Assembly: GCA_964199315.1 (NCBI GenBank)
Contig: OZ116700.1
Span: 9,300,001 to 9,364,000, forward strand
Length of the DNA: 64,000 nt
Direction: 5' to 3'
Source: Orbicella franksi
Taxonomy: Eukaryota
Below the pieces are notes generated by a model. That model searched no databases. It was not told the origin of the DNA and saw nothing but the letters and a program-made list of their open reading frames with translations. Numbering within the stretch: position 1 is the first letter of the stretch; the number at the start of each line of letters is the position of its first letter. A program made the translations under genes and the position numbers. Of the stretch, positions 3,615 to 45,027 are shown piece by piece.

Positions 3615-6600
3615 ATGGCCGTTCAAAAGCAAAGTACGCCTTCCTTTGCTTTAATAACTTCTGTTCTGTCTATTGTGTTTTACTGTGTTGGGTTTATAAG
3701 ATTGGAGGTGGAGCTGAACGAGCAGAAGAACAGAATAAATTTGCTTGAAAACGTTGTGAATGCCATCCCGCCGTCAGATCCACCAGAGCCAGACAACCCA
3801 AACATTCAACTACCCAAGAATTCTCCAGGTGAGTCCGAGTCTTAGAAGATACACTGAAGCCAGAAATAACTAATCTTTTAACAGTCACGGCTTGTTTGAA
3901 GGAAGTATTTAGCTTGCATGTTCTCGCCGCTCTACGTTTGCCGCGTGACAAACTAGCTACTCAGGGGTTAGGGGGTCAAATTTAAGAAAAAAACTAATAA
4001 TTCGAATGAAGTTGCTTTTAACCAAACATTTCCGGACTGAGGTCAATGATGAACAGCTGGTCCCAGTTGTCACAGCGTCTATATCAGGGATATCAAATGG
4101 TCTTTGGGAGCATTTGCAGACCGCACTCGAGAAAGCGGCGGAAATCGAGCCCAGCTTCCGAGCAGTGCGTTTATTTTTGCGAACGCGGGCAATAATCAAA
4201 ATTTTTCTTGCGAGCAGTGAGCACTTTAGAAAATACAGATGGCGAGCAGCGAGCACAGGTCAAATTTTGCGAGCACTTTTAAGTTGAATGGGACCATTCG
4301 ATACCCCTTATATCAGTTTGTCCTTTGCACGAGAAGATGTTGTTAGTGTGTTGATCCCCCCGGGGGGAGGGGAGGGAGGCTATTACCAGAAAAATTGGGT
4401 ATGGGTGTGTGGCCCGCTTCCCAATTGAAGCCCTTACCCTATTTATGACCAAAATCTGCGATTATCCTCACCCTATTTCTGACCTAACCAAAAATTCGAC
4501 ACCCTTTTTATGATCGTCGCGGCTGGCAAAGTTGCCCTAAAAATAATTCATGAAGAGCTTTTGATGATGGTCTTCTCGATAATGATGAAAAAGTAGTTTT
4601 TTTTTTTTTCTAGAAAACCATACTCTATGTATGACCAAAATGACCAAAAGCGATACGGTATGACCAAAACGGCTGAAAGACCCTACCTTTTGGGGCCGCA
4701 CATACCTATATAACCCATACAAGGAAGTACCCCGGGGGTCGACCCTTTGTGTCCCTTGCAGATGTTGCCATTACCCGAATTAAATGAAACTAAATAAAAT
4801 ATGAAATTTTCTGCGGATATCTGTATCGGTTGTCTTCTTGAGAAGACAAACGCTGAACTGTTTTCCAGAGCTGACAAAAGCCCATTAATTCCCGAGGTTT
4901 CAAATATTCGGTCTTATTTCTAACGTTGATTCGCAGGTGAAGTTCTCAGTTCAATGTACACTCGATTACCAGCCGCTGCTCGGGAAAGGAACCCGAGGAA
5001 CGTAGACCGGACTCGAGAAAGCGGCGGAAATCGAGCCTAAGTTCAATGACAAATTCGGCAATGTGAAAACGACACTAAGTTGTTTTTCCTTCGCTTTTGT
5101 AAATACAAGTCTGTTCATTTAAATACTTTTTTCTTTTGTTGATAGAAAGTCAAAAACTCCCTATAAACAAGCGTCAGGTTGACTCAACTAAGAACGTAAC
5201 GGAAACGAAAGGCAACGCGGAAACCACCATCAAAATCAGTCAGCGTCTTTTATCAGAATGGAGAGCACATCTTTGTCAATCAAAGGGTGTCACGTGCTCA
5301 TCAGGTCCCGCGGGCCCTCCCGGCCCACCTGGGACAAAAGGAGCTCGGGGAGAAAGGGGAAAGAAAGGAAGGACTGGAAACAAGGGAGATCAAGGCATTA
5401 TGGGATTGCCAGGAAAGAGCGGCAAGCAAGGCATTATGGGGCCTGTGGGGTTAAAGGGAGAGCCTGGAGCCAAGGGTGAGAAAGGAGAAATAGGACCCGC
5501 AGGCATGCCGGGAACGAAAGGTGAACCTGGCGAATCAATATCATCTCCTACTGTTGTTGTTTCTCCTGAGATGTTGACAGTGAACGAAGGTGGATCAGCC
5601 TCGTTTCAGTGTTCAGCCCGCGGTAACCCTGGGCCTGCAGTAGGGTGGAGTAAACTTGAGAATCGGTCAGAAATCATTCAGTCAGCGGTTTCAGGAGGAA
5701 AGTTGGAGTTAAAGAAGGTGACCGGAAATGACTCAGGCGTGTATCAGTGTTCAGCAATAAACATCCTGGGGCATTCACGGAAAGTGGTGCGATTAACAGT
5801 AAATGGTAAGTGTCTGTCACAGGTACTCAATTTCTCAACGATAATTTCTCTTCCGAAGCGTACAGGCTACGCTAAAAAATGGGTCGGAAAAGTCTCTCAG
5901 AAGAGCCACAGAGATATACTTTGACGAGCAAACTGGACCAGTTTGCTACTGCGTAGAACATATATATCAAATGAAGCATGGTTGTAAATACTGTAGTGGA
6001 AGTGCTTTAAAAATATTGAGTAGAAATAGACGTTTCGCGAAGTATTCGTTTATCTGTGTAAGTGCGACTACTACAGGTAGTAAAATGTCCGTACCACCAT
6101 ATCAAGTTGTGCTAAAACGCTTCGAAGCTAAGCTAAAAACTCGTTATGTTAACTCGATAGTACAGTTTCTGAATAAGCAGATACTGTGAACAGGCACTGC
6201 AAAGGGAATGTTTGCATTAATTGGTATCAGCATTTGAAAATTATACTACTTTGGCAATAATTTAGACAGCATAATTAAGAACAGTGCCTACTTTTGTTAG
6301 TGCGCACACGGTCTGCACATCACGCAAGGCATGGTTTAAGGTGGCCGAACACAGTTTTCGCGCTCGCTTTTGCTGATGCAATTCAGCGCGCGCACAATGA
6401 TTGCAAAAAACAAACATGCCCTCAATACAGCGATCATTTTATTTACTCAACACCCGCACTATCTGTGCTATTTTTCTCTATAATTGAACGTAGTGTATTG
6501 ATGGCTTTAGTCTTTTATCATAAATATATGTTAGAAAAGGTGAAGATGTAAAGAACTCAGCAATTCTCAGCTTTTTCTTTGATACCGAAAGAACCCAGTT

Positions 6601-8406
6601 AAATGCAGCGCATGCGTAGTAAGTCAAAAAATTGCGATTGAATGAAAATTTGCACTCTCGGAAATACGCCTATTTCTCGAGAACCACTCATTAGAATTTC
6701 ACGAAATTTGGCACGAAAATACTTTAGGAAATAAGTAACTGGTGTATTGAAAATAATTGAACTTTAACAAAGGAAACTCTAGATATTCCAGTAAACCTTC
6801 AATAAGGGATAATTAAAGATCTCTCTAATAAATTATTAGCAAAATGTCCTTAACTTGTTATAATCTTTACAAGCTTGGTACATGCAAATTGTAAAGAAAA
6901 TCTAATGACTAGATTTTCTACAAATAAACAAAACCGATTTTAAAGGCCTGTTTATTTTTATTCATGTTGCCATGGCAACGGCACATACGTCAGCTTAACC
7001 ATCAAAAAACCAAAGTTTGTGCTGTTAACTTGCTTGCTGCCATTTTTGGCGACCGAGAGATCAAGGGCGTTTGCTTTTCTGTATGTAAAGGCGAATTTTA
7101 AAGAAAGCTGTGAAGAAATATCCTCTCCTTCTTTCTTCTGAAAAATACTAGCGCTGATGTCAGCATTTTTGTTGAGATTCAAGGCTAATTTCTCGAAAAA
7201 ATGCGTGGTTACCCCCTTTTTTCTTTGTGGATTCCGATAGCCCTTGCAAAGATCTACTTTTTCCGCAAGGTCCTAACCTGGCGCAAAAACCTTTGCATTT
7301 AGTAGGCACAGTCCTTAATTCTTAAATATGTACTTAATTTTACTCACCAATTAAATGGGTCCTTTGAATTTACTTCGACTTTATGAAATTGTTAACTTCT
7401 GTTTTGTCTTCAGTTCATCCTGGAGTTGCTCTTCATCCGGGACCTCACTACACCCCTGAAGGAAGTCATTTCAATTTTCCAGTCTGTCACGTGACTGGGC
7501 ATCCGGCCCCGGTGGTCACCTGGAGGAAGTCATCGGGTCATTTACCTCAGGGGAGGGTACATTATAATAACACTGCTTTACAGATCTCAGATGTCCGTAA
7601 AAGTGACTCCGACACGTACGTCTGTTCAGCTGTCAACCTGTTAGGGAGTGATGAAAGAAAAACTCTTTTGGTCGTTGTTTCTCCTCCTCGGTTCACCTCA
7701 AAAGCATCTGTGAAGGTTGTTGCCTTTCTGGGCGGCAATTTGACGCTAACTTGTCTTGCTGGTGGTGATCCAAAACCTGTCATCAGCTGGAAAAGACAAG
7801 GAGCACAATTGCCAGTTGGGCGGAGTCTTGTGTCAAAAGAAGCGTTGATCATTAACAGTGTAAAGCTGGAGGATGCTGGGAACTACACCTGCGTGGCCAC
7901 AAGTGCAGGAGTGTCCAGCGTTGAGCATACAAGTTACATTGAAGTCACGAAGCCAGGTTGGTTTAGTATTACGAAAATAGTCTTTACTACTTCGAATAGA
8001 ATAAACCAAATTTATGAACAATAGCCTCCATTTGGCGAAAAAATATGCTCGGATATTTCTCCGTGGACATTATCTTTTCCGACAAGCGAACAGGTTCGTG
8101 AGGTTTGAAGAACAGCTAATGTTCAAGGGCAACTATCCAGCCAAATGGAAGCTTTGAACTTTGCTATCCTTGAAATATTTTTTGCAACACGCGGTTTTTT
8201 TTCGGAAATTGGGGAACGTATATCTCTCGGATATCATCTAGTTTTAGCTGGGGCATATTCAGTCATGTGACGCGTTTAGAAATATATCTGGAGGATAATA
8301 AACACAATAGCCTCCATTTGGCGCGAAAACACGCCGAAATCTGTTTTGTCCTTGACCATTTTCTGTTCATTAACAATTATTGCGCGAGCGCGCGTTGGAT
8401 AATTAA

Positions 8407-8459
<53 letters not shown>

Positions 8460-8485
8460 CCGTAGGGCCGAGTTGGCTATAACCA

Positions 8486-8519
<34 letters not shown>

Positions 8520-11500
8520 TTAATTATTAAATTCTCAGCCTCGGATAATGCAATTCTAGCTTTCTGATTGGTTCACTGGATCTTGGTTACCAGCCATTAT
8601 ACCTGCGTTTGACCTTATATGGAAATGAAAGCGGCAAATGTCGCTCGGCATAAGCTTTTTCGCGTGAAGCGAAGTTTCGTCGACAAAAAAAATGGATGAA
8701 AAAAAGCACACTCGGTGAGCTATCTACACAGGAAATACAGGAAATTATGGACAATGCTGTCCCAGTAACAACAAAAAAGCCACAAAGTTCGATATAAGGT
8801 TATTTAACGGTACGTGTACGTTAAGTTTCCCTTAAAGTTGCAAAATTAAAATATGACCGGCGAGATTTTACGCATTCATGAAGATTATGTGACAAAAACA
8901 ATGTTTACCTTAACAGAATGGCTTGCTAGTCCTGGTGGCACCAAATTTTCGAAACCGATATAAGAAAAGTCAAAAGAAGAACTGAGTGTTCAGTTGAAGT
9001 GTTTTTACTCGTCTGCGAGGAAGAAAGATGACACTTATTGCAAAAGTTCATTGATTAAATCCATTAGAGCCGCCGGTTGATCATTTCCTTTGCACGCCGC
9101 CGCACAACAAACCGTTTTCCTTTATCTCTTACCAGGCAAATAAATTATTAGAGCATATGCATTTGTAAAAGGCCGCAGGAAAACAGGCATAATTGCCGGC
9201 GTAGTCTATAAGAAACCAGTTTCCAATGAGCAGATGAGCAAACTGTTCGACTAAGCAAGCTCGGATCGGCCGAGAGCAAGAATCCCGCACAGCTACAGAG
9301 GACGACCTAGTTTCATCTCAGTCTCTTTTTTGGCCGACAACGACGAGAGTATCAACGACAGCTAGCGCCAACAATTCTGTCCTTGCGAAAAACACCTCAA
9401 GGAGTTGAGTGTTTTGAGCTGAACCGAAGTAAGCCCGGTTCTTTACCAGCCACGAAAAACTACCAGGGTGGCCTCGGAGATTCTGAAGATGAATCTGACG
9501 CTAAGATAGTTTCTGTCCTTGACTCTAAAACTGACCAACAATGAGCTCCACACATACAGCTCGAAATGCCAAGGCTTTCAAAGCAAGGGAATCCTGAGAG
9601 AGATCTGGTAGAGAATAATTTTGGCACAACGTCTGTCACATGGCGATCAAAGTTTTCCGCAGCATTATTACGATGGCAATGTGCAAGTGCACAATTATTT
9701 GGCTCTTCTCCATGACTTGAACTCGAACGTTTTCAAACTTTCTGGCCAAGGTTATATCTCCTTCATTTGATAGACGTTTCTTGAATTCTACTTGATTGCA
9801 ATTTCATTCAGCAAATTCGTTTGCTGTAACCATCTCATATCTAAAAAGCGCGAGTGGAGTAATTGTGCTCTTAAAAATGCCCCCAAAATATAGAAAACTA
9901 AACTAAAATAAAAATAAAAACACTCAAAAAATCACGCGTATGCTTGCAACATTTGTAGAACATGTTACAATGGCTGATAACTTATGATGGCTGAGCCAAT
10001 GAAAACTCTCGAATTGCATTTACCAATGATCCAGTTTTTAATAATTAAAGATAGACTTGAAGCTATTACGATTTTTTTGGAATTATTGATTCCATGCAGT
10101 TTTTAGTTTCGTTGTGTGGCTCTGATCGAGAGGACGCTAGGTGGTAAAATAGAGTTATCGTACCTATGAACAAGTTTAGATTTGTACAAGGTTTATTTGC
10201 AGACCGAACTTGGGCATTGCATTTTTTGTCGTTCTCAGTCTTCTCAGAGTTCAGTTCCATTAACTGAGTACTACTTCCGTTCATACTCATCCCTGTCTAG
10301 TAGCGTTCTTACGTTTTTAGCTGTCTTAATTAATTTAATTATGCAGAATGGCGGAGCACCTTTTGGCCGTGTTGAGGTTTATTACAGAAACGTTCGAACC
10401 TTATCCAGTTTTTCGTTATAATTTAAGGTTGCTGTTGCTTCTGAATCAATTGAGAACCAGACGCCGAAAGCTTTAACTTTGTATATAGGCCATTTAAAAT
10501 TACTTCCAGGAGTTTATTCCATCGTTCCCACTATTTAATCCAATCCAAAGGGCTTCTGTGTTTTTTATTATTAAGTTTTAAAATACAGTGAAACCTGTAT
10601 TAAGCGAACCCCATATTATGCGGACACCCTCTATTAAGTAGACACCAGCCTTAGGGACCGTTCATTTTTTATAAGGTAGGGGGGGCTGGTGGGATTTGGG
10701 GGGGGGGCCATGCGAAAAAAAATGGCTTTCGAGGGGGGGCCATCCCAAAAAAATAAGGGAAAAAGGGGGGGTCACGTGAAATATTTTAGTAAAACTTTAA
10801 AATGGCATAATGTTTGAATATCAAATAAATTGCTATAGAATAAACATAGAAGGCAGGATACAAATTTATTACAAACTTTGCTTCTGCTTTAAAAAAAAAA
10901 CGTTTGGCGACAAAAAGCATTTGTAGCTACTGAAAAGAAGTATTTAACACTGTTATTTTCAAATGCAACTTTCACTGGCACTCATCTTCATCTTCGCTGT
11001 CGTCGAGTTCTTCGTCGCCGCTTGCGCTGCTATGGGAGTCTCTTTCACCAATGCTGCAAGAAGCAGCAATGCTTTCGGTCAGAGTGTACTCTTCAGGGCA
11101 CATGAAGGTGTAAACATAATCTCTGACTTCCTGCTCAAGGTTGGTAGTGATTCTGCTTCTTGCAGCATTGGTGAAATAATTCCCTTCCAAGAGCTGTGCG
11201 ATGTATGGCCCATCTCTTCTAAATAACGACGCGGAAACATCCTCAACTTTAATACACTCTTCCGGGACGGCCGTTCTAGGAGGGTACACAAGGCATTGTG
11301 GAAGATCATTTCCTAGCGGGTTTCCAACACAGATTCCATAAACTCGTTGGACGTTATTTTCAGTTCGCTTCCTCTTTCTTTCATTTGACTTTCTGCGGTT
11401 TTCTTTTTTCCTTCTCCTTTTGTTGATGAGCTGTTTGAGTATGCCCTTGAATATGCTGTTATAATTGCTCTTCTTATTTTCTAGTGCTTCCATGTCCTGC

Positions 11501-14500
11501 GTGACCTTCGTCAACTTAGCTTCTATACATTTAATCTGTTTTACATTAAAACTGTGGGCAAATTCTTCGCCCTACTTTAAAGCAAGCCCATTGGACTGAA
11601 AGAGGGTGGAATCGTGTTCCTTTACATCTTTCAATATGACATTCAACTTTTCCATCATTGCTCTGTGCTCTCACCCAGAGAGCGTTGCTCTATTTGCAGA
11701 TAAGTTTATTGTCAAATCAAAGTTTGTGGTGGATTATCTTCAGCATCTTGAAGTGCTGGAATTTAAAAGTAAAAAGAGAGCAGAAGAAAAGGCAAAGTTA
11801 AGTAGGGACGCAAAAGATAAATCATATGAGGATTATCCTTGGACGGAGTTGTGTGAAGATCTAACCAAGCTTAAAAAGCTACGTGTTCCAGAATTAAACA
11901 AGTACTTGAACCACCACGGACTGAGGCAGCATTTGAAAAGCAGCAAGAGTGAGAAAGTAAAGGCATTTGTAAGACATTCATGCTTGCAGCAGAAGAGTCC
12001 TCTCAGAGCTGGCCAACCAACACTGAGAAATGCCAGGACATTGACACAAAATGACAACAGAGCAAGTGCTGACAGCAGTGAAACGGATGAAAGTGACAAT
12101 GATGCGTATGACAGTGATGCCATTGACTCTGGGGGAGAAGATGACTCTGGTGATATCATTCTTGCATTCATCAATTCAGATGAGGAAGATGCCAATGAGA
12201 GGCCAAATGCCACACGCTCAGGGCGAGCCATAACTAGGAGATCCGAAATTGACTTCTCTTTCTTTTGATTTGTTTTTTAAACAACAGCTCTCTGTAGTAT
12301 AGGGATTGTAAATATTGTCTTCATAGTGAGCACAATAACGTGAAGTAGGGGGGATAATAGAGAAATATTAAAAAAGTTGAAATCTAAAAATTGTTTGTTT
12401 AATTTTTTTTTTTGGGGGGGGTCATCCCAAAAAATGCCCGCTATAAGGGGGGGGGGCCATGTGAAAAAATTGGTAAGCTGAGGGGGGGTCATGCGATTTA
12501 TAAATGGTGCTTCCCAGATCCCACCAGCCCCCCCTCCTTCGTAAAAAATGAACGGTCCCTTAGTCCCAAAATGTTCTTCCTACATTTACTGTAAAATAAA
12601 CCTGCATTCGGACACCCCTGTTACGCGGACGCGGTCACCAATATTAAGCTATTTTGTTGCATAAAACCTGCAATAAGCGGACACTTCAAGGGCTTTTTAC
12701 TTCTGAAAGTTCAGTTCAGCTCAGACTCCTTTAACATTGTTCAGTGATATACTTTCAAAGCTAAGTAGATTGATGCATTGACTGACTGGACATTGTACTA
12801 TGAGCAGTCTTTGATCTTACATTGTGTGTGTTACGCTGTGTTACAAAAGAGTTAATAATTAACTATTATTACACAATGTATTAGAACCTGTTTAGAGCGG
12901 ACACCCTGTATTAAACGGACACTGGTGAGGGTCCCAAGGGTGTCTGCTTCATACAGGTTTCACTGTAGACACTTCATAATAATCATCCAGCGTTTTAAGA
13001 GACTAAGAGAGGCCCTTAGGGATTTCTTTGTACCGTCTAGTATGAGTGTTGTATCGTCTGCATACTGACCTAATTTAATTTCCTTACTGTTCACGAAGAT
13101 ACCTTTAATACTTTTGTTTTCCCGAATCGCCTTGGCTAGCACTTCAACTGACAAAACAAACAAGTAATTAGGAAAGAGAGGACAATCTTCTCTTAGACCT
13201 CTTAGCTTTGAATTTCAAAGAAATCACTCGCCCCACCGTTGTTCAAAACACAGCTTTCAGTCTGGGTGGCAAAAGAAAAGATGCAACTACCAAAACCAAA
13301 AAGTTGAAAGTTTTTCTGATGAAAGACCATTCTATCGTGTCAAAATGTGAAGAGCTTTTTCAAAACCCAAAATCAAGAGTAATCCTGGAATATTTTTCTC
13401 TTTGGCATAGCAAATGACACTTTCGATAAGACGAATGTTTTCTTCAATTAATCTACCTTTTATAATTGATGACATAATTGATGAGATTAGGAAGAGAAGG
13501 TTTCAAGCGATTAGCGATTGACTTTGCCGCTATTTTGTAGTCGCAGTTCAGGAGGGTTAGAGGTCTCCAGTTTTTGATGAAGAAAGGTTATGCGTCTTTC
13601 TTAGGGATGAGTGTGATAATTCCTCTTCTCTGAGTTACTGAGAGTTGTCCAGTTTCATAAGCGTAGTTCAGTGCTCTAATAAGGATGGTGTCTATATCAT
13701 TGCAAAAATACTTTGTAAAATTCAGCTGGCAAACCGTCCGTTTTGGTTTCACTGTCATACATACGTACATACATCACCTTTATTTGTACACTATTAAAAA
13801 TCCTAATTGAACGACAAAGTAGCGCGGGTTTTCAAGCCAATCACATCGCATTTAATTATGGAAAGAGAAGCAAAGCTGGAAGTGCCCAGTCTGTAATAAC
13901 CTCTAAATTATATGCTTTACAATATTCCAATAACCAATAAACGTCCTTTATCTACACTGTAAATTCAAAAGATCTCTTACGGCCCTAAAATGCAAATTTA
14001 GCCCTCGCTACGTCTGATTCTTTGCCAATAATAATCTGGGCCAGACAGCACCTTCAAAAAAAAAAAGAACTATTTTAGCCCAGTCCTACCCATTTCAGTG
14101 CGTAGGTCCGTATCAGTCCATAAAAATTAGTTCCCTAACTGGTACCGTGTTTTACTCATTGAAAGGTTTATGCCCCATGTAAGTGTTTAAAACAGCTCTT
14201 GTAAATTTATACAGTGACAACGTCCAGTTTACGAAGTATTAACTTTTATTATATGGCCAGCTCCGTGAGCGGGCAAGATGAACCAAATCCTGCGCTGTGA
14301 CTGGCTACCCGAGCGGGCAAGATGGAGCTATCTTGCCCGCTCGGGACTACCCGTCGTGTCCCGCGAGAAAAATTTCCCCGAAATAGCCATATAATAAATC
14401 CTTTATTGACCAAGCTTGTTCGGTCAAGATGGCTGAATATTGGCCCCGTTCTTTTTTTACGAGTTTATGGACCTCGACTCCGTCTCGGTCCATAAACATG

Positions 14501-17500
14501 TAAAAAAAGAACTTGGCCAATATCCAACCATCTTGACCTCACACTTGGTCAATAACCCTTATGTATTGTTTTTAGTTCATCCTGGTGTTGCTCTTCATCC
14601 GGGACCTCACTACACCGCTGAAGGTAGTAATTTCAGTCTTCCAGTCTGTCACGTGACTGGCGACCCAGCCCCAGTTGTCACGTGGAGAAAATCATCGGGT
14701 CAGTTATCCAAGGGAAGGGTGCAGTATAACAACAGTGCTTTACAGATCTCAGATGTCCGTAAAAGCGACTCTGATACGTATTTCTGCTCAGCTGTCAACT
14801 TGGCAGGACGTGAAGAAAGAAAAACTCTTTTGGTCGTTGTTCCTCTTCCTCGGTTCACTTTAAAACCTTCTGTAAAGGTTTTTGTCTCTCTTGGCAGCAA
14901 TTTGACGCTAAAATGTAGCGCCACTGGTGATCCACAACCTGTCATCAGCTGGAAAAGACACGGAGCGCAATTGCCAGTTGGGCGGAGTCGCGTGTCAAAA
15001 GGCGCGCTGATCATTAACAGTGTAAAGCTGGAGGATGCTGGGAACTACACCTGCGTGGCTACGAGTGCAGGAGTGTCCAGCGTTGAGCATAGAAGTCGAG
15101 TAGTGATAAAGAAAGGTTAGTTTAGTTGTACGAGAATATTTGAAGGAAATATTTCTGGTCATTACTGCTAAATAGTTCGCAACAATCAAAATTAAAATAA
15201 CTTGAAGACAAACTTGAAATTTTTACCATTTTTTCAATTTTTTTTTTCGTTTGCAGTTTTTAGTTTTTTATATGTGTTGACTGAGTAAAGGTTGTCTGAT
15301 AAAGATAAGCTTTATAAAATTCTGTATTTGAGGTTATCATTTACTGTAGGTACTGAATGAGTATATAGAGACATTTGCTATGATGGCTCAATCGAAATTA
15401 GATAGAACCAGCGTGCGTGCTTTGGTTTTCACTGGCGCACAAACATAAGCCGACATACGTAGACACGCCAGTAAGACGTTCTTAATCCAGGTGACCAAAA
15501 CTGACCCAGGCATGCATGCATCAGTGTGCAGCAACAAACATAATGGGTGACTCACGGAAAGTGGTTCAATTTACAGTAAACGGTAAGTTTCTGTCAGAAA
15601 GCGAGTTTAAATTGATATTCAGTAAAACTCAAAAGAAAATAATTACTCCAGCCAATCACAAAGGACGCAGACAAGCGAGTCACGATTAGTTCTGGTTTTA
15701 CTGTCATAATTAAATACGTACTTACATAACCTTTATTTGCACACGATTAAAAATTCTGATTGAACCACAGGGAGGTTAATCTGTTATTCATATTCTAATT
15801 GGATGTGAGGACTCCCTGTGATAGAACGACAAAGTAGCGCGGGTTTTCAAGCCAATCACATCGCATTTAAGAATGGAAAGAGAAGCAAAGCTGGAAGTGC
15901 CCAGTCTGTAATAACCTCAAAATTATGCTTTACGCACGGCAATATTCCAATAACCATTAAACCTCGTTTATCTACACTGTAAAATCAAAAGATCTCTTAC
16001 GGCCCTAAAATGCAAATTTAGCCCTGGCGACGTCTGATTATTGGCCAATAATAATCTGGGCCAGAAAGCAGCTGTAGAAACGAACTATTTCAGCCCAGGC
16101 TTACTTATTTCAGTGCGTGAGTCCATATCAGCCCATAAAAATTAATTCCCTAATTGGTACCCTATTTTACTCACCGAAAGGTTTATGCCCACTTACGTGT
16201 TTAAAACAGATCTTGTGAATTTATACAGTGACAACGTCCAGTTTACGAAGTATTAACTTGTGTTGTTTTTAGTTCATCCTGGTGTTGCTCTTCATCCGGG
16301 ACCTCACTACATCGCTGAAGGAAGTAATTTCAGTTTTCCAGCCTGTCACGTGACTGGCGACCCAGCCCCAGTTGTCACCTGGAGGAAATCATCGGGTCAG
16401 TTACCTAAGGGGAGAGTGCAATATAACAACACTGCTTTACAGATCTCAGATGTCCGTAAAAGCGACTCTGATACGTACCTCTGCTCAGCTGTCAACCTGG
16501 TAGGAAGTGATGAAAGAAAAACTCTTTTGGTCGTTGTTCCTCTTCCTCGTTTCACTTTAAAACCGTCTGTGAAAGTGGTTGCCTCTTTTGGCAGGAATTT
16601 GACGCTGAAATGTAGCGCCACCGGTGATCCACAACCTGTCATGAGCTGGGAAAGACAAGGAGCTCAATTACCAGTTGGGCGGAGTCACGTGTCAAAAGAA
16701 GCGCTGATCATTAACAGTGTAAAGCTGGAGGATGCTGGGAACTACACCTGCGTGGCTACAAGTGCAGGAGTGTCCAGCGTTGAGCATAGAAGTGAAGTAC
16801 TGATCGAACCAAGTAAGTTCCGTTTTACGAGAATATTTGAAGGAAATATTTCTGTATACTACTGCATGATTCGGATAAATCAAAGAAATATGAGGAGAGA
16901 CTCTGAAATTAATTTTACCATTTTTTTCAAATTCTTTTTATTGCACTTTTTAGTTTTTTATATGCGTTGACTGGTCAACGATTGTGTAAAGTTCTGTCTT
17001 TGAGGTTTCATTAAGTTACTGAATGAGCACATAGAGATTTTTACTATGGTGGCACCTTAGGAATTAGGTAAGACCAGCGCGCGCGCTATGTTATATGGCT
17101 GGTTTTCATCGAAATACAAGCATAAGCTGACATACGCAGCCAGACGCAGTCGGATGTTGATAATTAACAGATTTTGTTCGGAAAATCTCCTAACAAAGAG
17201 GTGCGTCTTAGCAGCACTTTACCGCGTCTGCTTATGTTGAATATGGCTATACTTGTGCGTCAGAGAAAAACAGCCTATAACCATTTCTTTTAACTCGGGA
17301 ACAATATTCGTGAAGCTGATATCACGCAATGCGTCTAAAACACCTATCAGTTATAATTTGATTTCTATATCTGCACTAGTTCGCTTAGTCAATGGTGGAG
17401 CATCTTATGGACGTGTTGAGGTCTATTACAATGGATTATGGGGCACCGTCTGTGATGATGACTGGGATATCAAGGATGCTAATGTGGTATGTCGTCAGCT

Positions 17501-20500
17501 AGGCTTCTTTCGCGCATCCGGGGCTCCCCATGGAGCAACGTACGGTCAGGGATCTGGTACAACCTGGATGGATAATGTTGGTTGTCAAGGAGGAGAGGCG
17601 TCGTTACTACTCTGTGCTCACAATGGATGGGGAACTGAGAACTGTGGTCATAGCGAGGATGCAAGTGTGGAGTGTGAAGGAGTTCGTTTAGCCAATGGCG
17701 GAGCATTTTATGGCCGTGTTGAGATTTATTACAATGGGGAATGGGGCACAGTGTGTGGTGATGGCTGGGATATCAAGGATGCTAATGTGGTCTGTCGTGA
17801 GCTAAGATTCTCCCGAGCAACCAGCGCTCCTCGTCAAGCAAAATACGGTCAGGGGTCTGGTACTATCTGGATGGATGGCGTCAATTGTCAAGGAGATGAG
17901 GCATCGCTACGAGAGTGTACCTATGACGCGGATACATCTGACTGCAGTCATAGCGAGGATGCAAGTGTTGAATGTGAAGTAATGGTTCGTTTAGTCAATG
18001 GCGGAGCATCTTATGGCCGTGTTGAGGTTTATTATAGTGGGCAATGGGGCACAGTGTGTGATAATGGCTGGGATATCAAGGATGCTAATGTGGTATGTCG
18101 TCAGCTTGGCTTCTTTCGTGCATCCCAGGCTCCCATAGGAGCAAAGTATGGTCAGGGGTCTGGTACAATCTGGATGAATAGAGTCGCCTGTCAAGGAGAT
18201 GAGGCATCGCTACAACAGTGTCCTCGTGTAAAATTGGGAACAGGTGACTGTAGTCATAGCGAGGATGCAAGTGTGGAGTGTTTAGCAGTTCGTTTAGTCA
18301 ATGGTGGAGTGTTATATGGCCGTGTTGAGGTTTATTACAGTGGGCGATGGGGCACAGTGTGTGATGATTCCTGGGATACCAATGATGCTAATGTGGTCTG
18401 TCGTGAGCTCGGCTTCTCTCGTGCATCCGGGGCTCCTCACAGTGCAAAGTACGGTGAAGGGTCTGGTACTATCTGGATGGATGGCGTTAATTGTCAAGGA
18501 GATGAGGCATCGCTACGAGAGTGTACCTATGACACGGATACATCTGACTGCAGCCATAGCGAGGATGCAAGTGTTGAGTGTGAAGTAATGGTTCGTTTAG
18601 TCAATGGCGGAGTATCTTACGGCCGTGTTGAGGTTTATTACAGTGGACAATGGGGCACAGTGTGTGATAATGGCTGGGATATCAAGGATGCTAATGTGGT
18701 ATGTCGTCAGCTCGGGTTCTTCAGTGCATCCGGGGCTCCCCATAGAGCAACGTACGGTCAGGGCTCTGGTACTATCTGGATGGATAGAGTAGCTTGTCAA
18801 GGAGATGAGGCATCGCTACAACAGTGTCCTCGTGGAAAATTGGGAACACGTTACTGTAGTCATAGCGAGGATGCAAGTGTGGAGTGTTTAGCAGTTCGTT
18901 TAGTCAATGGTGGAGTGTTATATGGCCGTGTTGAGGTTTATTACAGTGGGCGATGGGGCACAGTGTGTGATGATTCCTGGGATACCAATGATGCTGATGT
19001 GGTCTGTCGTGAGCTCGGCTTCTCTCGTGCATCCGGGGCTCCTCACAATGCAAAGTACGGTGAGGGGTCTGGTACTATCTGGATGGATGGCGTCAATTGT
19101 CAAGGAGACGAAGCATCGCTACGAGAGTGTACTTATGATGCGGATACCTCTCACTGCAGTCATAGCGAGGATGCAAGTGTTGAGTGTGAAGTAATGGTTC
19201 GTTTAGTCAATGGCGGAGTATCTTATGGCCGTGTTGAGGTTTATTACAGTGGACAATGGGGCACAGTGTGTGATAATGGCTGGGATATCAAGGATGCTAA
19301 TGTGGTATGTCGTCAGCTCGGGTTCTTCAGTGCATCCGGGGCTCCCCATAGAGCAACGTACGGTCAGGGGTCTGGTACTATCTGGATGGATAGAGTAGCT
19401 TGTCAAGGAGATGAGGCATCGCTACAACAGTGTCCTCGTGGAAAATTGGGAACAGGTGACTGTAGTCATAGCGAGGATGCAAGTGTGGAGTGTTTAGCAG
19501 TTCGTTTAGTCAATGGTGGAGTGTTATATGGCCGTGTTGAGGTTTATTACAGTGGGCGATGGGGCACAGTGTGTGATGATTCCTGGGATACCAATGATGC
19601 TAATGTGGTCTGTCGTGAGCTCGGCTTCTCTCGTGCATCCGGGGCTCCTCACAGTGCAAAGTACGGTGAAGGGTCTGGTACTATCTGGATGGATGGCGTT
19701 AATTGTCAAGGAGATGAGGCATCGCTACGAGAGTGTACCTATGACGCGGATACATCTGACTGCAGTCACAGCGAGGATGCAAGTGTTGAGTGTGAAGTAA
19801 TGGTTCGTTTAGTCAATGGCGGAGCATCTTATGGCCGTGTTGAGGTTTATTACAGTGGGCAATGGGGCACAGTGTGCGATGATGGCTGGGATATGAAGGA
19901 TGCTAATGTGGTATGTCGTCAGCTGGGCTTTTCCCGTGCATCCCAGGCACCCAGGGGAGCAAAGTATGGTCAGGGGTCTGGTACAATCTGGATGAATAGA
20001 GTCGCTTGTCAAGGAGATGAGGCATCGCTACAACAGTGTCCTCGTGGAAGACTGGGAACAGATGACTGTAGTCATAGCAAGGATGCAAGTGTGGAGTGTG
20101 AAGGAGTTCGTTTAGTCAATGGCGGAGCACTATATGGCCGTGTTGAGGTTTTTCACAGTGGGCAATGGGGCACAGTCTGTGATGATGACTGGGATATCAC
20201 TGATGCTAATGTGGTGTGTCGTCAGCTGGGCCTCTCTCGTGCATCCGGGGCTTCTACTGGAGCAAAGTATGGTCAGGGCTCTGGTACTATCTGGATGAAT
20301 GACGTCAGGTGCAAAGGAGAAGAGGCATTTCTTCAACAGTGTACCCATGATGCAGACACATCTGACTGTAGTCATAGCAAAGATGCAAGTGTGGAGTGTG
20401 AAGTAATGGTTCGTTTAGTCAATGGCGGAGCATCTTATGGCCGTGTTGAGGTTTATTACAGTGGGCAATGGGGCACAGTGTGCGATGATGGCTGGGATAT

Positions 20501-21923
20501 GAAGGATGCTAATGTGGTATGTCGTCAGCTGGGCTTTTCCCGTGCATCCCAGGCACCCAGGGGAGCAAAGTATGGTCAGGGGTCTGGTACAATCTGGATG
20601 AATAGAGTCGCTTGTCAAGGAGATGAGGCATCGCTACAACAGTGTCCTCGTGGAAGACTGGGAACAGATGACTGTAGTCATAGCAAGGATGCAAGTGTGG
20701 AGTGTGAAGGAGTTCGTTTAGTCAATGGCGGAGCACTATATGGCCGTGTTGAGGTTTTTCACAGTGGGCAATGGGGCACAGTCTGTGATGATGACTGGGA
20801 TATCACTGATGCTAATGTGGTGTGTCGTCAGCTGGGCCTCTCTCGTGCATCCGGGGCTTCTACTGGAGCAAAGTATGGTCAGGGCTCTGGTACTATCTGG
20901 ATGAATGACGTCAGGTGCAAAGGAGAAGAGGCATTTCTTCAACAGTGTACCCATGATGCAGACACATCTGACTGTAGTCATAGCAAAGATGCAAGTGTGG
21001 AGTGTGAAGTAATGGTTCGTTTAGTCAATGGCGGAGCATCTTATGGCCGTGTTGAGGTTTATTACAGTGGGCAATGGGGCACAGTGTGCGATGATGGCTG
21101 GGATATGAAGGATGCTAATGTGGTATGTCGTCAGCTGGGCTTTTCCCGTGCATCCCAGGCACCCAGGGGAGCAAAGTATGGTCAGGGGTCTGGTACAATC
21201 TGGATGAATAGAGTCGCTTGTCAAGGAGATGAGGCATCGCTACAACAGTGTCCTCGTGGAAGACTGGGAACAGATGACTGTAGTCATAGCAAGGATGCAA
21301 GTGTGGAGTGTGAAGGAGTTCGTTTAGTCAATGGCGGAGCACTATATGGCCGTGTTGAGGTTTTTCACAGTGGGCAATGGGGCACAGTCTGTGATGATGA
21401 CTGGGATATCACTGATGCTAATGTGGTGTGTCGTCAGCTGGGCCTCTCTCGTGCATCCGGGGCTTCTACTGGAGCAAAGTATGGTCAGGGCTCTGGTACT
21501 ATCTGGATGAATGACGTCAGGTGCAAAGGAGAAGAGGCATTTCTTCAACAGTGTACCTATGATGCAGACACATCTGACTGTAGTCATAGCAAAGATGCAA
21601 GTGTGGAGTGTGAAGTAATGGTTCGTTTAGTCAATGGCGGAGCATCTTATGGCCGTGTCGAGGTTTATTACAGTGGGGCATGGGGCACAGTGTGTGATGA
21701 TTCCTGGGATATCAATGATGCCAATGTGGTATGTCGTCAGCTGGGCTTTTCTCGTGCATCCGGGGCTCCTCACCATGCAAAGTACGGTCAGGGGTCTGGT
21801 ACTATCTGGATGGATGACGTCAGTTGTCAAGGAGACGAGGCATCGCTACTACACTGCACTCACAATGGAATGGGGAATGAGAACTGTAGTCATAGCGAGG
21901 ATGCAAGTGTGGAGTGCGAGTAA
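3615..21923 (+). CDS. Class A scavenger receptor-like type II membrane protein (TM, coiled coil, collagen, 7 Ig, 15 SRCR), ~2346 aa. Exons 3615-3828, 5146-5805, 7414-7956, 14576-15115, 16273-16812, 17380-21923
   Basis: All five introns are GT-AG and phase 1, and the frame is continuous (7041 nt). Exon 1: hydrophobic [18 protein letters not shown], then heptad [19 protein letters not shown]. Exon 2: 26 uninterrupted Gly-X-Y triplets plus one Ig (C..W..DSGVYQC). Exons 3-5: two Ig each. Exon 6: 15 x 101-aa SRCR domains, then TAA. Joining the exons into one gene is inferred without RNA data. Confidence 0.8.
4087..4307. mobile_element. MITE with ~16-bp TIRs and 7-8-bp target duplication
   Basis: gggatatcaaatggtc ... 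gaccattcgatacccc. Flanks ctatatca (4079-4086) and ttatatca (4308-4315). Confidence 0.65.
4357..4738. mobile_element. Second copy, inverted, of the CCCGGG-terminal element at 1172-1533
   Basis: Contains the reverse complement of its blocks (accctatttatgacc; aaaacggctgaaa). Termini ccccggggg at both ends. No clear TSD. Confidence 0.65.
6279..7314. mobile_element. Non-autonomous DNA transposon with TTAA target duplication (Kolobok-like)
   Basis: ttaa|gaacagtgcctact ... agtaggcacagtcc|ttaa. TTAA TSD with purine-purine start matches Kolobok; the family call is inference. Confidence 0.6.
8399..8527. repeat. Long palindrome/hairpin at the left end of the Crypton-like relic
   Basis: Perfect 42-bp inverted arms 8399-8440 and 8486-8527, with a nested atagccaac/gttggctat and ggccc/gggcc stem. 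Confidence 0.9.
8690..9560 (+). pseudogene. Decayed Crypton-type (DUF3504-like) tyrosine recombinase gene
   Basis: Hand translation with stops and frameshifts: [24 protein letters not shown], then GT-AG intron 8810-8916, then [43 protein letters not shown]...[26 protein letters not shown]. This resembles the FGRRGRENQR box of DUF3504/Crypton recombinases (recognised from memory). Confidence 0.65.
10347..10387 (+). pseudogene. Isolated SRCR-domain start fragment in intron 3
   Basis: aatggcggagcaccttttggccgtgttgaggtttattacag encodes [13 protein letters not shown], nearly identical to the starts of the exon-6 SRCR repeats. Confidence 0.75.
10586..12965. mobile_element. Tc1/mariner (pogo-like) MITE with TA target duplication, carrying a nested element
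   Basis: ta|cagtgaaacctgtat ... atacaggtttcactg|ta: perfect 15-bp TIRs plus internal cggacac subterminal repeats. Confidence 0.85.
10654..12559. mobile_element. Internally deleted DNA transposon with ~47-bp TIRs and 3-bp TTA target duplication (PIF/Harbinger-like signature); holds two divergent ORF remnants (10972-11514 on -, 11606-12268 on +)
   Basis: tta|gggaccgttcatttttt...aaaaaatgaacggtccc|tta. Neither ORF remnant shows a recognisable DDE or Myb motif. Confidence 0.8.
14246..14562. mobile_element. Hairpin-containing non-autonomous element inserted just upstream of the exon-4 acceptor
   Basis: Absent from the paralogous intron before exon 5 (~16255-16272). Internal palindrome ttattgaccaag...ttggtcaataa. 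Inverted copy at 33665-33937. Confidence 0.8.
15491..15588 (+). pseudogene. Relic copy of the 3' end of exon 2 (Ig C-terminal strands plus donor site)
   Basis: Matches 5719-5812 (gtgacc...tcagtgt.cagcaa.aaacat..tggg...tcacggaaagtggt..ga/aatt.acagtaaa.g|gtaag) but carries a 4-bp gcat insertion. Confidence 0.75.
17380..21923 (+). repeat. Coding tandem array of 15 SRCR domains (303-bp monomer, 606-bp higher-order unit)
   Basis: Domain starts fall at 17379 + 303n. Six Cys per domain. Identical antisense ORFs recur every 606 bp (19809, 20415, 21021). Confidence 0.97.
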
Positions 21924-23564
21924 AACCATTACAGAATCGTAGAGTAATCATGTAGATTTTTGTGAATAACACGACAGTACGTACTTATTTGAAAGTTGAA
22001 ACTGACACCTTTGTTATCCATAGTAGAAAGTTCAAAGCTCTTCGAACAAAAAATGACATAAACATTACTTTTTTTTCTTAAGAAATATAAAGACTTTCTG
22101 AAAGTCCTATTTGTTTCCGTAGCAATTTTTTTAAAATTTAATACACGCAGTTTGGTTTTGTTTTTGATAGGGTGATACCGATGAGAATCCGAAATAGAAA
22201 GTGACCACTGATAAAAACAGTCAAACACACGTTTATTATTGTCTTGAAGTGATTCCATGTTGTGTAGGGCATGAATATGTTTGTATTTGAATTAACTGAC
22301 TTTTCTACCAAGACTCTTACTTTTTAAGTCTTTTTTTTTCTAAGCCTCTTGCTAATTATGACGAACCTCTATTAAGCGGCAAACTCCTAATAAGCGGCAC
22401 CCTCCTATTTCCCCAAGGGGAGCCGATGAATACGGGTGCGACAATAAGTTTATAGGTAAATCAGTTATATAAAAAGAAATTCTACGAAATATTCTTCTTG
22501 CCATTATATGGTTACGTCACAAGATAATTCACACTTAACTAGATGAAAAGTGTGAAATTATTGTTAAAGACAATTAGTGCCATAAAAATTAATTGCGTAT
22601 AAAAACTGTTAGAAACTTCTATCATTGTTAAATATCAAATCGCTTCCATAAAAAATGAAGCATTACTAATTGACTATATATCTTAAGTAATAAAAACATT
22701 ATTTTTGTGTCTACTCGACTGAGACATAGACAGCACCTGTTTGCGCACATTTAAGTATTTTACTTGTTTTTAGTTACTTAAGACGAGTTTTAGGTCTAGG
22801 GAAAAACGTCTTTATGAAGTTCCAGTATTTACTGATAATGGAATGGACTTATTTTGCCCATTCATTTGTGAGACATGGTGGCTCCGTTTTGGCATTTATA
22901 CTACGAATATGCGTTTAGTTCAGTTTCTCAATCCCTTAAATTCCATTACCTAAATATCTTAGGGAAACAAAGTCCGATGCATCCTTTAAATCTATCAACC
23001 CATTTTTAGTTTAGGATTTTTATCTTAACTTGGGCGCTGCCTCTTGTTGACAGTTTCGTAGAACTGCTAAGAATTTGTCCATGATTTAACTGTGTGTTTA
23101 TCCGATTAAACTTAGGTTTGTCATCTATAATTAGTTTCTAGTAACACCTAACGTTATTACATTCTAGTGAAAGTTGTATTGTATAATTTTAACTATAGGT
23201 TTAGCCTTAGTGTAAAGCTTTGGTTAGCAACAGAAATTGCGTGAGAAACGGCGTATGATAACAATCTTTTAAGCTCTTCGTTGTTAGGTAAAGATAATTA
23301 GTTCATGTGTGAGCAATTAAGCATTCGAAAAATACAAAACTAGTCATCGTAAGGAGAGGATTTTGAAGAAGGAAAATTGAACGTGAAACCAGTTGAGACG
23401 ACCCTCCTGAGAAGAGATAAAACAAGAGAATAAAGAAAAGGCAAGAGTTTAAAAGTAAGGTTACTGAATTAAAATCTTATTGTTGAATTGTTGGCTGTGG
23501 AGTACCTCGCTCACTGAGCTAGTTCCCCGAAGGGCGCGCCACTTTCACGCGGTCATCTCAACAG

Positions 23565-27985: not shown

Positions 27986-28368
27986 GGAAGGATTTCGAGA
28001 GCAATATACCTGTGTGTCCGCTTATTGATAGAAGCCTGAGCCCCTGTAACATAACAAGATATGAATTTAGAAACTTATTGAGACTAGTGCTTCATAAAAC
28101 AGTATCTGTCCCATCTGAGTTCAATAACTTAGTTCAGATGTGCACAGTGGTTCGAAGAATAAAACCTTATTTCCTTTTTCTAAATATTGATTGCATTTTT
28201 TATCAAGGAAATGCTGTTAATTGAAATTCAGATTTAATTTGAGAACAGATGTCATTAGTGTTTCACAGACAAATGTACTCAATATAAATAATCTTTAGAA
28301 GTGGAAAGATCCAATCAGACCAATATTATTTGGGGTCATTTAAAGCGATTTGCAACCGAACACCAAAG

Positions 28369-34749: not shown

Positions 34750-44595
<9,846 letters not shown>

Positions 44596-45027
44596 CTTGG
44601 CTTCGTGGATTACGCAATAGCATTTGGAACGAGGAGGAATGGGTACTTCTGTCCTGTCTGGGGGCCTTGGCACGAGGAAATTTTAAAGCTCTTGTAAAGG
44701 GAAAAACATGAGATATGGATTGATTGGCTAGATTCTTGGACTTGAAAAGAAGCGACTGTTTGATTTATTCGATTACAGCACCTACAGAGCTCAAGCCACA
44801 TACTCAAAAAGAGAACAGAATTCTGACCGGAACTGACATTTGCATTTTCGCTATAAGGTACTTTTTTTTTTTACTGTAAACTCTCCGTGCAAGCAACTTT
44901 TAGATCTCTTGAAGGTCTGTTGGTGATTTGGTCGAGCGGCTTTAGTTACAAATCAATTAGAGGGTATTCTCGGGAGGGAAAACAGCGTTAAAGATCTTAT
45001 TTTATAGTCCAAGCATGTAGAGCGCCT

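Follow-up and report, generated by a model that had tools for sequence, protein, structure and literature searches.

In a 64-kb window of Orbicella franksi DNA, which is the whole stretch analysed here, one gene predicts a collagen-stalked membrane protein with Ig domains and a C-terminal array of SRCR domains. Is it a relative of the vertebrate scavenger receptors SR-A1, MARCO and SCARA5, or a member of another family that has come to resemble them? Our comparisons favour the latter: this six-exon scleractinian gene is very probably a member of the cnidarian ficolin-like (CniFL) chassis family, in which the Ig2-Ig3 exon would have been triplicated and the fibrinogen head exon replaced by an exon of 15 SRCR units; its likeness to SR-A would be convergent.

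Gene layout, SRCR array and alleles

The gene lies at 3615-21923 (+), and every intron is GT-AG and of phase 1 (the donor of exon 1 is CAG/GTGAGT). When the six exons were spliced, they gave one open reading frame of 2,346 aa, from the ATG at 3615 to the stop at 21921-21923. From the N- to the C-terminus, the predicted protein is composed of a Lys-containing tail of 9 residues, a hydrophobic anchor, a short coiled coil, a KR site, a collagen domain, seven Ig domains and 15 six-Cys SRCR domains. The anchor, residues 10-28, is the sole strongly hydrophobic 19-residue window (Kyte-Doolittle mean 2.19), while the short heptad stretch, approximately residues 27-50, was read by eye off the sequence and not scored by a coiled-coil program. 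Pfam assigned Collagen and one Ig domain to exon 2, two Ig domains each to exons 3, 4 and 5, and 15 SRCR stretches to exon 6; the collagen run (residues 125-202) is unbroken, and Pfam found no CUB or ZP domain in this protein. Self-comparison (83-88% identity) showed that the duplication of exon 4 into exon 5 took in introns. By Pfam, hydropathy and the one-ORF splice model, the coordinates, anchor, 26 triplets, seven Ig and fifteen SRCR domains of a preliminary description of this DNA were right.

Table 1. Positions of the gene's exons, domains, polymorphic codon and relic copies in the window.
Feature	Position (nt)	Strand	Evidence
Exon 1: start codon, 9-residue tail, signal-anchor, heptads, proline/acidic spacer	3615-3828	+	Sequence, model, hydropathy
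Signal-anchor, residues 10-28	3642-3698	+	Hydropathy
Short heptad/coiled-coil stretch	about 3693-3764	+	Sequence
Exon 2: spacer with basic site, collagen, Ig1	5146-5805	+	Pfam, RNA words, cDNA L003
Basic site I-N-K-R/Q in exon 2 (K-R)	5169-5174	+	Sequence
26 G-X-Y triplets	5304-5537	+	Pfam Collagen 8.9e-16
Ig1	about 5550-5805	+	Pfam I-set 8.3e-14
Exon 3: Ig2-Ig3 pair	7414-7956	+	Pfam, cDNA L003
Relic of SRCR unit start in intron 3, 41 nt	10347-10387	+	88-95% identity to exon 6 unit starts; 13-aa tblastn match
Exon 4: Ig4-Ig5, duplicate of Ig pair exon	14576-15115	+	Pfam, L003, RNA joint
Relic copy of exon 2 3' end in intron 4	15489-15596	+	80% identity to 5716-5819
Exon 5: Ig6-Ig7, tandem duplicate of exon 4 block	16273-16812	+	Pfam, self-comparison, RNA joint
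Exon 6: 15 tandem group A SRCR, then stop codon	17380-21923	+	Pfam, TRF, RNA, L003
SRCR2 polymorphic codon: TAT (Tyr) in window, TAG (stop) elsewhere	17727-17729	+	L080, RNA contigs X1, X7
3' UTR, probable	21924-22774	+	Aligned post-stop sequence of cDNA L003

TRF resolved exon 6 into 15.0 copies of period 303, and the units alternate, giving a period of two units (606 bp). Each unit has 101 aa (the last one 100) and six Cys at fixed spacing, and the units abut without linkers. Cys was found in 15/15 units at positions 25, 38, 69, 79, 88/89 and 98/99, which is the group A spacing, and in alignments to CD163 both extra Cys positions are not Cys in the coral units. All 15 domains are encoded by a single exon, unlike vertebrate group A SRCR domains, each of which is, as a rule, encoded by at least two exons. 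An acidic pair D-D follows G-T-V-C in 10/15 units, and S-E-D in units 1-8 and 15 is replaced by S-K-D (Glu to Lys) in units 9-14. Our own, tentative placing of these motifs on the DMBT1 numbering makes the S-E-D Glu equivalent to a cation-site residue of that protein. The cation-dependent ligand site of DMBT1 is D1019/D1020/E1086 (PMC7043408). The median dN/dS among the units was 0.57 (range 0.10-0.93), and dN/dS between the window and the metatranscriptome cDNA contig L003 was about 0.4; both point to constraint on the coding sequence.

Polymorphism at the locus is high: SRCR number and sequence vary, a nonsense allele occurs, and allelic diversity climbs toward the 3' end. At 17729, G is read in a genomic contig of the same species (L080, 99.76% identity across 1,681 nt) and in RNA contigs from runs X1 and X7, made in two separate studies; the SRCR2 codon is thus TAG in 3/3 other same-haplotype samples covering the site, and in animals with this allele only SRCR1 of the array would be translated. 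In units 9-14, a 606-bp stretch is present three times with differences of 0-1 nt, and because of this near-identity the count of 15 is possibly mis-assembled or very recent; it depends on the allele or the assembly. In view of the stop codon in SRCR2 of the other samples, the 45 SRCR domains per trimer proposed earlier apply to the reference allele only. Other coral contigs contain 7 SRCR units (L010, with exon 2 and one Ig pair), 5 (L008), at least 8 (L005), 3 (L011) and 1 each (L014 and L064).

It is possible, if doubtful, that most animals make a truncated product (chassis, seven Ig domains and one SRCR) or that the gene is decaying, the 15-SRCR frame being a feature of the reference individual or assembly. 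The shared TAG, the near-identical 606-bp copies and the single-SRCR relatives are in line with this, whereas the reference frame is open over 1,514 codons, the older units have dN/dS below 1, and the relatives' arrays of 3, 5, 7 and at least 8 units are open, each with a proper stop. The L080 array, moreover, is open apart from one SNP, and the TAG samples are just three, possibly of shared ancestry.

The CniFL chassis and its predicted working

The CniFL family has already been described from cnidarians (Baumgarten et al. 2015, cited in PMC5094078; van der Burg et al. 2016, PMC5094078; Seneca et al. 2020, PMC7654579). Its members have a TMD and three Ig domains according to PMC5094078, and they are up-regulated on Vibrio infection (PMC7654579). 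We compared the gene exon by exon with Fibrinogen_C-headed proteins of Oculina patagonica (676-678 aa) and found 62% identity for exon 1 (residues 1-68 against residues 1-68, gapped BLASTP), 74-78% for exon 2 and 66-71% for exons 3-5. The N-terminus is colinear with those of the full cDNAs L020 and L031, the chassis aligns over its whole length with members from Acropora, Actinia and Nematostella, the tandem CniFL array L002 has the same exon plan, and the basic site, Arg then Q-V-D-S, is kept across the family. The same chassis was found with Fibrinogen_C, TLDc, F5/8C, Ephrin_lbd, ILEI, Lectin_C, OLF and PHR heads. When a fibrinogen head was searched for in the 64-kb window by tblastn with the full-length fibrinogen-headed protein P0305, nothing matched its head region, beyond about residue 480.

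The gene thus has in common with CniFL genes, which occur in tandem clusters, a homologous TMD, coiled coil, basic site, collagen, Ig1 and Ig2-Ig3 exon and the phase-1 plan; it differs in having 15 SRCR domains instead of one fibrinogen-related domain and seven Ig domains instead of three. Because its head is SRCR and its Ig pair exon is triplicated, it falls outside the published CniFL definition of Collagen + Ig + Fibrinogen_C. The Ig pairs of the SRCR-headed relatives form one clade (SH-aLRT 100) separate from the fibrinogen clade. No Collagen+Ig+SRCR protein was present among the matches listed in protein-database searches, and an earlier survey of six cnidarians reported only two collagen+SRCR sequences (PMC5119243). 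The earlier suggestion that the architecture may be undescribed holds for this combination among the listed matches but not for the chassis, which belongs to a described family.

In this family the chassis would be anchored as a type II membrane protein: a very short cytoplasmic tail leads into a signal-anchor and a brief coiled coil, after which come a basic processing site, a collagen helix of 26 triplets, three Ig domains (Ig1 within the collagen exon, Ig2-Ig3 in a single exon) and lastly a head on its own phase-1 exon. Here the Ig2-Ig3 exon appears to have been triplicated to give seven Ig domains, with one large tandem group A SRCR exon in place of the usual fibrinogen head exon. Collagen domains imply trimers, and the coiled coil and collagen would assemble the protein into one; the Ig domains would serve as a stalk, and through the SRCR array the protein may bind polyanionic or microbial ligands polyvalently and probably in a cation-dependent manner. 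It could act at the membrane or, after K-R/Q cleavage, as a shed agglutinin; a shed soluble form would be as likely as a fixed receptor, because the chassis keeps the basic processing site.

Alternatively, the protein could serve in adhesion, matrix or self/non-self discrimination (allorecognition or symbiont sorting) and not as a microbial pattern receptor, which we judge unlikely. Such a role would agree with the high, 3'-rising allelic diversity, the variable SRCR number, the Ig stalk typical of adhesion molecules and the binding of host proteins by SRCR domains (PMC7043408). Two observations weigh against it: expression of CniFL, the closest family, rises on bacterial infection (PMC7654579), and agglutination of microbes is known for SRCR arrays such as DMBT1 (PMC7043408).

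Likeness to SR-A/MARCO and unity of the gene

The preliminary description had set the protein on the SR-A/MARCO plan and its repeats close to MARCO. The order is indeed alike: SR-A1, MARCO and SCARA5 combine a type II anchor, a coiled coil and a trimeric collagen stalk with a six-Cys SRCR of group A at the C-terminus, and the same is predicted for the coral protein, whose 26 triplets supply the collagenous G-X-Y domain. In SR-A proteins, however, one C-terminal SRCR (or CTLD, or none) stands right after the collagen, whereas here the collagen is followed by seven Ig domains and only then by the 15 SRCR domains, which all lie in one exon. The SR-A cytoplasmic tail is also far longer than the 9 residues of the coral gene. 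Against the PDB, one SRCR unit scored highest with SCARA5 (118 bits), closely accompanied by LOXL2 (118), SR-A1 (109), DMBT1 (107) and MARCO (101), M2BP and CD163 being about equally close; a special likeness to MARCO was therefore not upheld. The vertebrate chassis appears to have no sequence kinship to the coral one, which is 62-78% identical per exon to fibrinogen-headed CniFL proteins and shares their exon plan, and neither chassis nor head appears closer to SR-A than to other families. That the gene is a true SR-A1/MARCO/SCARA5 homologue which gained Ig and extra SRCR domains, as the shared order and the top SCARA5 score might be read, is therefore most improbable, given also the foreign Ig domains, short tail and tandem SRCRs and at least eight other heads on the same chassis. 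Since the chassis carries many swapped head exons, of which the SRCR array is one, the comparison suggests convergence by exon shuffling and not common descent. By analogy, the coral protein probably works like SR-A, as a trimeric polyanion receptor.

Array searches gave DMBT1-type and other tandem-SRCR proteins as top matches. DMBT1/SALSA/gp340, CD163 and sea urchin SRCR genes likewise have long tandem arrays of variable copy number, and the G-R-V-E-V...W-G-T-V-C and acidic motifs of DMBT1-type proteins are kept in many coral units. Those proteins, however, are of group B (eight-Cys), with linkers (SID) and CUB/ZP domains or a C-terminal TM, and are without the collagen and N-terminal anchor of the coral gene.

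Public transcript data support the SRCR-headed gene as a real, transcribed, single gene. Exon 2 was found in many coral RNA runs (up to 0.82 of its sampled words per run), RNA depth is high in exons and low in introns, and an RNA contig of run X2 displays the exon 4-5 joint 15115/16273. The cDNA L003 joins exons 2-3-4-5-SRCR exactly at the predicted borders. It matches exon 2 at 100% (5636-5805, ending exactly at 5805), exon 3 at 99.8% (its 170-713 against 7413-7956) and exon 4 at 98.7%, falling to 94% in exon 5 and 87% in SRCR1. The contig possibly stems from another allele or from a paralogue, or its assembly is in part chimeric. Its frame, open for 1,102 aa, runs from Ig1 through six further Ig domains into the SRCRs across the homologous junction ...IEP/VRLVNGG and ends ...VECE-stop as in the window, and the post-stop sequence aligns with 21923-22458 at 78% and 22629-22774 at 86%. 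The exon 5-6 joint of the window is supported by this homologous joint, by an X7 RNA contig that begins at acceptor 17380 with 8 extra letters and by zero RNA depth at 17221-17347 in 4/4 runs; no contig seen of the window haplotype runs across it, and another X7 contig begins at 16813, exactly the first base of intron 5. The cDNA proposed earlier as a check across six exons was thus obtained for exons 2-6, in a homologous and not identical form, exon 1 lying outside L003; expression, unity and domain order were supported by the RNA runs, L003, Pfam and the one-ORF model.

That the collagen/Ig exons and the SRCR exon are two separate genes, the case named earlier as refuting, was not borne out and is close to refuted: the unspanned 16812/17380 joint and the locally low RNA coverage of intron 5 would fit it, but the SRCR frame has no ATG or signal sequence ahead of SRCR1, L003 and the depth profile speak against it, and the SRCR exon lies about 0.6-0.7 kb after an Ig pair exon in five coral contigs (L005, L008, L010, L011, L080) and 1.2-1.4 kb downstream in L014 and L064.

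Meaning for coral receptor repertoires

More tentatively, one TM-collagen-Ig3 family of hexacorals might rebuild the whole vertebrate defence collagen repertoire by phase-1 head exon swaps, with the SRCR branch as a fast-evolving, highly polymorphic recognition locus. In such a scheme, fibrinogen heads would parallel ficolin, C-type lectin heads SRCL/collectin, olfactomedin heads gliomedin and SRCR heads SR-A/MARCO; SRCR arrays would range from 1 to 15 units in two-unit steps, haplotypes would diverge 3'-ward with a truncating allele segregating, and the branch would serve microbe, symbiont or self/non-self discrimination. Gliomedin, collectin-12/SRCL and ficolins resemble the coral protein in that a globular head for recognition sits on a collagen stalk, either type II-anchored or secreted, with a basic cleavage site, and the OLF (P0439) and C-type lectin (P0327) heads of coral siblings mirror gliomedin and SRCL; the analogy is one of design only, and the coral family differs by three Ig domains between collagen and head.

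Few cnidarian-specific candidates for pattern receptors exist; the CniFLs are among them and have so far been defined by their fibrinogen head. SRCR, lectin, olfactomedin, TLDc, discoidin and PHR heads on the same chassis suggest that CniFL is one branch of an exon-shuffled modular receptor family, and the gene described here would show convergence on the SR-A/MARCO design in a clean form. The SRCR-headed clade occurs in several coral metagenomes and is absent among the listed protein-database matches, which indicates that coral immune repertoires are under-annotated here. With its copy-number and nonsense polymorphism, it would provide a natural experiment on whether the length of the SRCR array bears on coral infection or symbiosis.

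Gene structure, transcription and splicing

We resolved the gene at 3615-21923 on the forward strand into the six exons listed in the table, setting all splice sites by eye and script. All introns have GT-AG ends, all junctions are in phase 1, and the open frame after splicing comprises 2,346 codons. Residues 10-28 form the sole strongly hydrophobic window, preceded by a 9-residue tail, and a K-R pair at residues 80-81 lies between the heptad stretch and the collagen stretch, which consists of 26 G-X-Y triplets without a break. The SRCR units of exon 6 have 101 amino acids each, with six Cys at constant spacing, and adjoin without linkers; TRF analysis of the array gave a period of 303 x 15. 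The features and coordinates reported in the preliminary description were thus borne out by the forward-strand ORFs, the splice model and Pfam. An acceptor at 17389, which is in frame as well, was rejected, as the cDNA contig L003 from another coral sample uses a different one.

Exons of the gene and other features of the window
Feature	Coordinates	Strand	Content
Exon 1	3615-3828	+	9-residue tail and hydrophobic window
Exon 2	5146-5805	+	Pfam: Collagen and one Ig
Exon 3	7414-7956	+	Pfam: two Ig
Exon 4	14576-15115	+	Pfam: two Ig
Exon 5	16273-16812	+	Pfam: two Ig
Exon 6	17380-21923	+	Pfam: 15 SRCR stretches
Acidic ORF in intron 3 (6.6 kb)	11606-12268		220 aa; no Pfam match
Retroelement debris in intron 3	12960-13770	-	Short ORFs with reverse-transcriptase motif Q-Y-A-D-D; Pfam RVT_1 E=9e-4
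High-copy repeat	14300-14560		Just 5' of exon 4
Inverted repeat	14403-14555		83% identity; inside the high-copy repeat
Two ORFs without introns	28330-28923; 31485-32051	+	197 and 188 aa; C-terminal ends alike
Two similar exons	44227-44673; 55107-55640	-	Common ...L-L-G-P-G-P-x-N-P-S-M-R-x-Y-N-A-S-A-M...; appear to be the first coding exons of tandem duplicates of an alanine-glyoxylate aminotransferase-like gene
N run	57006-57152		
ORF without introns	58179-60641	-	821 aa; TPR repeats, methyltransferase core, PRMT oligomerisation subdomains; resembles PRMT9-type protein arginine methyltransferases

Many RNA runs whose label is either coral metagenome or a coded coral contain exon 2 of this reef-coral gene. 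For four RNA runs (X1, X2, X5 and X7), Logan contigs were mapped to 14300-18100, a span that lies 3' of exons 1-3. The results showed RNA depth on exons 4, 5 and 6 and little or zero in the introns. In X2, one contig leaves out 15116-16272 and thereby joins exons 4 and 5 as predicted, with GT..AG ends. One X7 contig starts exactly at 17380, plus 8 extra letters, and a second starts at 16813, the first base of intron 5; at 17221-17347 depth was zero in all four runs. Ahead of SRCR1, neither an ATG nor a signal sequence was found in the SRCR frame. On the high-copy repeat the summed RNA contig depth was 6,000-22,000, whereas the exons had depths in the tens, and the contigs there showed numerous loose ends and skips. 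The repeat has the appearance of a MITE- or SINE-like element carried in many transcripts.

We used the exon 5 protein to scan coral metagenomes and metatranscriptomes from JGI and found L003, a contig without introns. Its bases 1-170 are 100% identical to window 5636-5805, and bases 170-713, 712-1253 and 1252-1792 match exons 3, 4 and 5 with 99.8%, 98.7% and 93.9% identity, respectively, the block joins coinciding exactly with the predicted exon borders. After exon 5, L003 continues in frame into five SRCR domains (junction ...IEP/VRLVNGG) and ends in the same C-terminus as the window (...VECE-stop), with a 3' UTR that aligns beyond 21923. Its exon 4 and 5 variants were found again in X2 RNA contigs, indicating that L003 is a real expressed haplotype or paralogue and not noise. 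The link between exons 1 and 2 is drawn from homology: the full cDNAs L020 and L031 of sibling genes, together with RefSeq models, share the N-terminal anchor M-x-V-Q-K-Q-S-x-P-S-F-A... and continue colinearly into the collagen. When JGI contigs were searched for an exact match to the window haplotype's spliced junction of exons 5 and 6, none was found, and this 16812/17380 joint was seen only indirectly. L003, the RNA depth and the SRCR frame without ATG or signal nearly exclude the alternative of two separate genes. The gene is expressed and spliced, with indirect signs at the 5-6 joint of this haplotype.

Kinship with CniFL-type genes and SRCR-headed relatives

The exon 2 search covered 1.84 billion representatives; hemicentin-like and collagen proteins dominated the matches, and relatives were chosen by single-stretch coverage. 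They are proteins of 570-860 aa in which spacer, collagen and Ig1 are covered in one stretch. Pfam analysis of ten of them gave Collagen and three Ig, followed by TLDc, Fibrinogen_C, F5/8 type C, Ephrin_lbd, ILEI or no further domain. Additional C-terminal domains, here called heads, came from searches with a profile and with the L003 ORF, and were then confirmed on proteins: Lectin_C in Nematostella vectensis (P0327; three Ig stretches; C-type lectin, SRCL/collectin-like), OLF in Oculina patagonica (P0439; three Ig stretches; olfactomedin, gliomedin-like) and PHR in Stylophora pistillata (P0342; two Ig stretches). The database names of P0439, P0327 and P0342 are 'hypothetical', 'myosin light chain kinase' and 'uncharacterized'.

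The closest full-length relatives are fibrinogen-headed O. patagonica proteins, 676-678 aa long, to which exon 1 is 62%, exon 2 74-78% and exons 3-5 66-71% identical. Collagen, Ig and fibrinogen define the cnidarian ficolin-like proteins (CniFLs), which mostly have a TMD and a total of three Ig domains (PMC5094078). The genomic contig L002 of another coral carries three CniFL genes in tandem with the exon plan of the window gene, each consisting of four exons: anchor, collagen plus Ig1, Ig2-Ig3, and fibrinogen head. These genes (L002:745-20417, ENA contig ctg29359_202x_l) lie head-to-tail at a spacing of about 9 kb. In an alignment with Acropora, Actinia and Nematostella members, window exons 3, 4 and 5 each matched the Ig2-Ig3 pair, so the gene consists of Ig1 and three copies of this pair; the exon 4 and exon 5 blocks are 83-88% identical, introns included. 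A relic of a fibrinogen or other head was sought in the window and not found. These sequence comparisons indicate kinship with CniFL-type genes, and the evidence says that the SR-A/MARCO-like design arose by a head-exon swap on the CniFL chassis of anchor, coiled coil, collagen and Ig.

Several genomic contigs with SRCR heads, from coral samples other than that of the window, were drawn from the 80 loci of the exon 5-protein scan. The SRCR exon lies about 0.6-0.7 kb 3' of the Ig pair exon in L005, L008, L010, L011 and L080, and 1.2-1.4 kb 3' of it in L014 and L064. L010 comprises exon 2, one Ig pair and 7 SRCR; L008 has 5 SRCR, L011 3, L014 and L064 1 each, and L005 at least 8, its array leaving the contig end. 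The number of units is odd in all complete arrays, which fits array growth by two-unit (606-bp) steps, as suggested by the alternation of units in the window. When a quick maximum-likelihood tree was built from the Ig pair exons, 11 of the 12 SRCR-labelled pairs fell into one 21-row clade (SH-aLRT 100) with no fibrinogen members, the heads of the remaining 10 rows being unknown, and fibrinogen-headed pairs formed their own 51-row clade with no SRCR members. The Ig pair of L064 was placed apart. An SRCR-headed clade therefore exists.

The domain-architecture check proposed earlier found no Collagen+Ig+SRCR protein among the matches listed in the protein-database searches. With the SRCR exon as query, DMBT1-like proteins overwhelmed the search, and the matches listed included none of this genome and none with collagen. 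In a survey of six cnidarians, only two collagen+SRCR sequences were reported, each of which also had CUB domains (PMC5119243). We considered P0023, an Ig+SRCR protein of Dendronephthya, and rejected kinship because its type I SRCR-array-Ig-TM architecture lacks collagen.

The SRCR array and its polymorphism

When one SRCR unit was scored against all PDB chains, the bits were 118 for SCARA5 and LOXL2, 109 for SR-A1, 107 for DMBT1 and M2BP, 105 for CD163 domain 9 and 101 for MARCO. The special likeness to MARCO proposed in the preliminary description is not supported; the units are generic group-A SRCRs. The unit motif G-R-V-E-V-Y-Y-x-G-x-W-G-T-V-C appears similar to the bacteria-binding peptide V-E-V-L-x-x-x-x-W of DMBT1. 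The cation sites through which DMBT1 binds ligands rely on an acidic pair together with a Glu and are also conserved in MARCO, CD6 and CD163 (PMC7043408). In our own motif mapping onto these sites, D-D follows G-T-V-C in 10 of the 15 units, and the Glu of S-E-D is retained in units 1-8 and 15 and is Lys in units 9-14. The dN/dS between units (median 0.57, range 0.10-0.93) and between window and L003 (about 0.4) point to coding constraint that is somewhat relaxed.

The locus is polymorphic. The genomic contig L080 is 99.76% identical to window 16689-18369, and one of the four differences is at 17727-17729, where the window has TAT (Tyr) and L080 has TAG. The same G occurs in X1 and X7 RNA contigs, which show no other difference from the window, so in all three other samples covering the site on the window haplotype the protein would end 12 residues into SRCR2. 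A stop in the last exon should spare the message from nonsense-mediated decay; the message with this TAG should therefore escape it, and RNA depth does go on 3' of the stop. Identity to the window was 97% for L017 (exons 2-3, introns included), 93-94% for L006 (exons 4-5) and from 100% down to 87% along L003, showing that divergence grows toward the 3' end. Units 9-14 comprise three copies of 606 bp, 0-1 nt apart, and with such near-identical copies the count of 15 SRCR in the window is provisional. X5 carries a third exon-6 haplotype at 17471-17675 (6 differences in 205 nt, 4 of them amino-acid changing), and its RNA depth exceeds that of the other three runs, a further sign of numerous alleles or paralogues.

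Basic site before the collagen and proposed working

The stretch between coiled coil and collagen retains, family-wide, an Arg and then Q-V-D-S. The site reads R-H-[ST]-R in the fibrinogen clade, R-S-K-R in L064, S-R-R in L010 and L013, I-N-K-R in the window, L017 and L016, R-N-R-R in Acropora, R-F-R-R in Actinia, R-Y-K-R in the Logan-assembly protein P0233 and R-Q-R-R in Nematostella. In the window the dibasic pair is kept, whereas the Arg expected at P4 in a classical furin site is absent; shedding by a proprotein convertase is plausible.

The protein would have type II topology and form a trimer via coiled coil and collagen, with the Ig domains as a stalk and an SRCR array that may provide polyvalent, cation-dependent binding; it could possibly be shed. 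CniFLs are under discussion as putative lectin-pathway receptors, and they are upregulated in Exaiptasia on Vibrio infection (PMC7654579; PMC4840205). The SRCR-headed gene of O. franksi may have an immune or recognition role.
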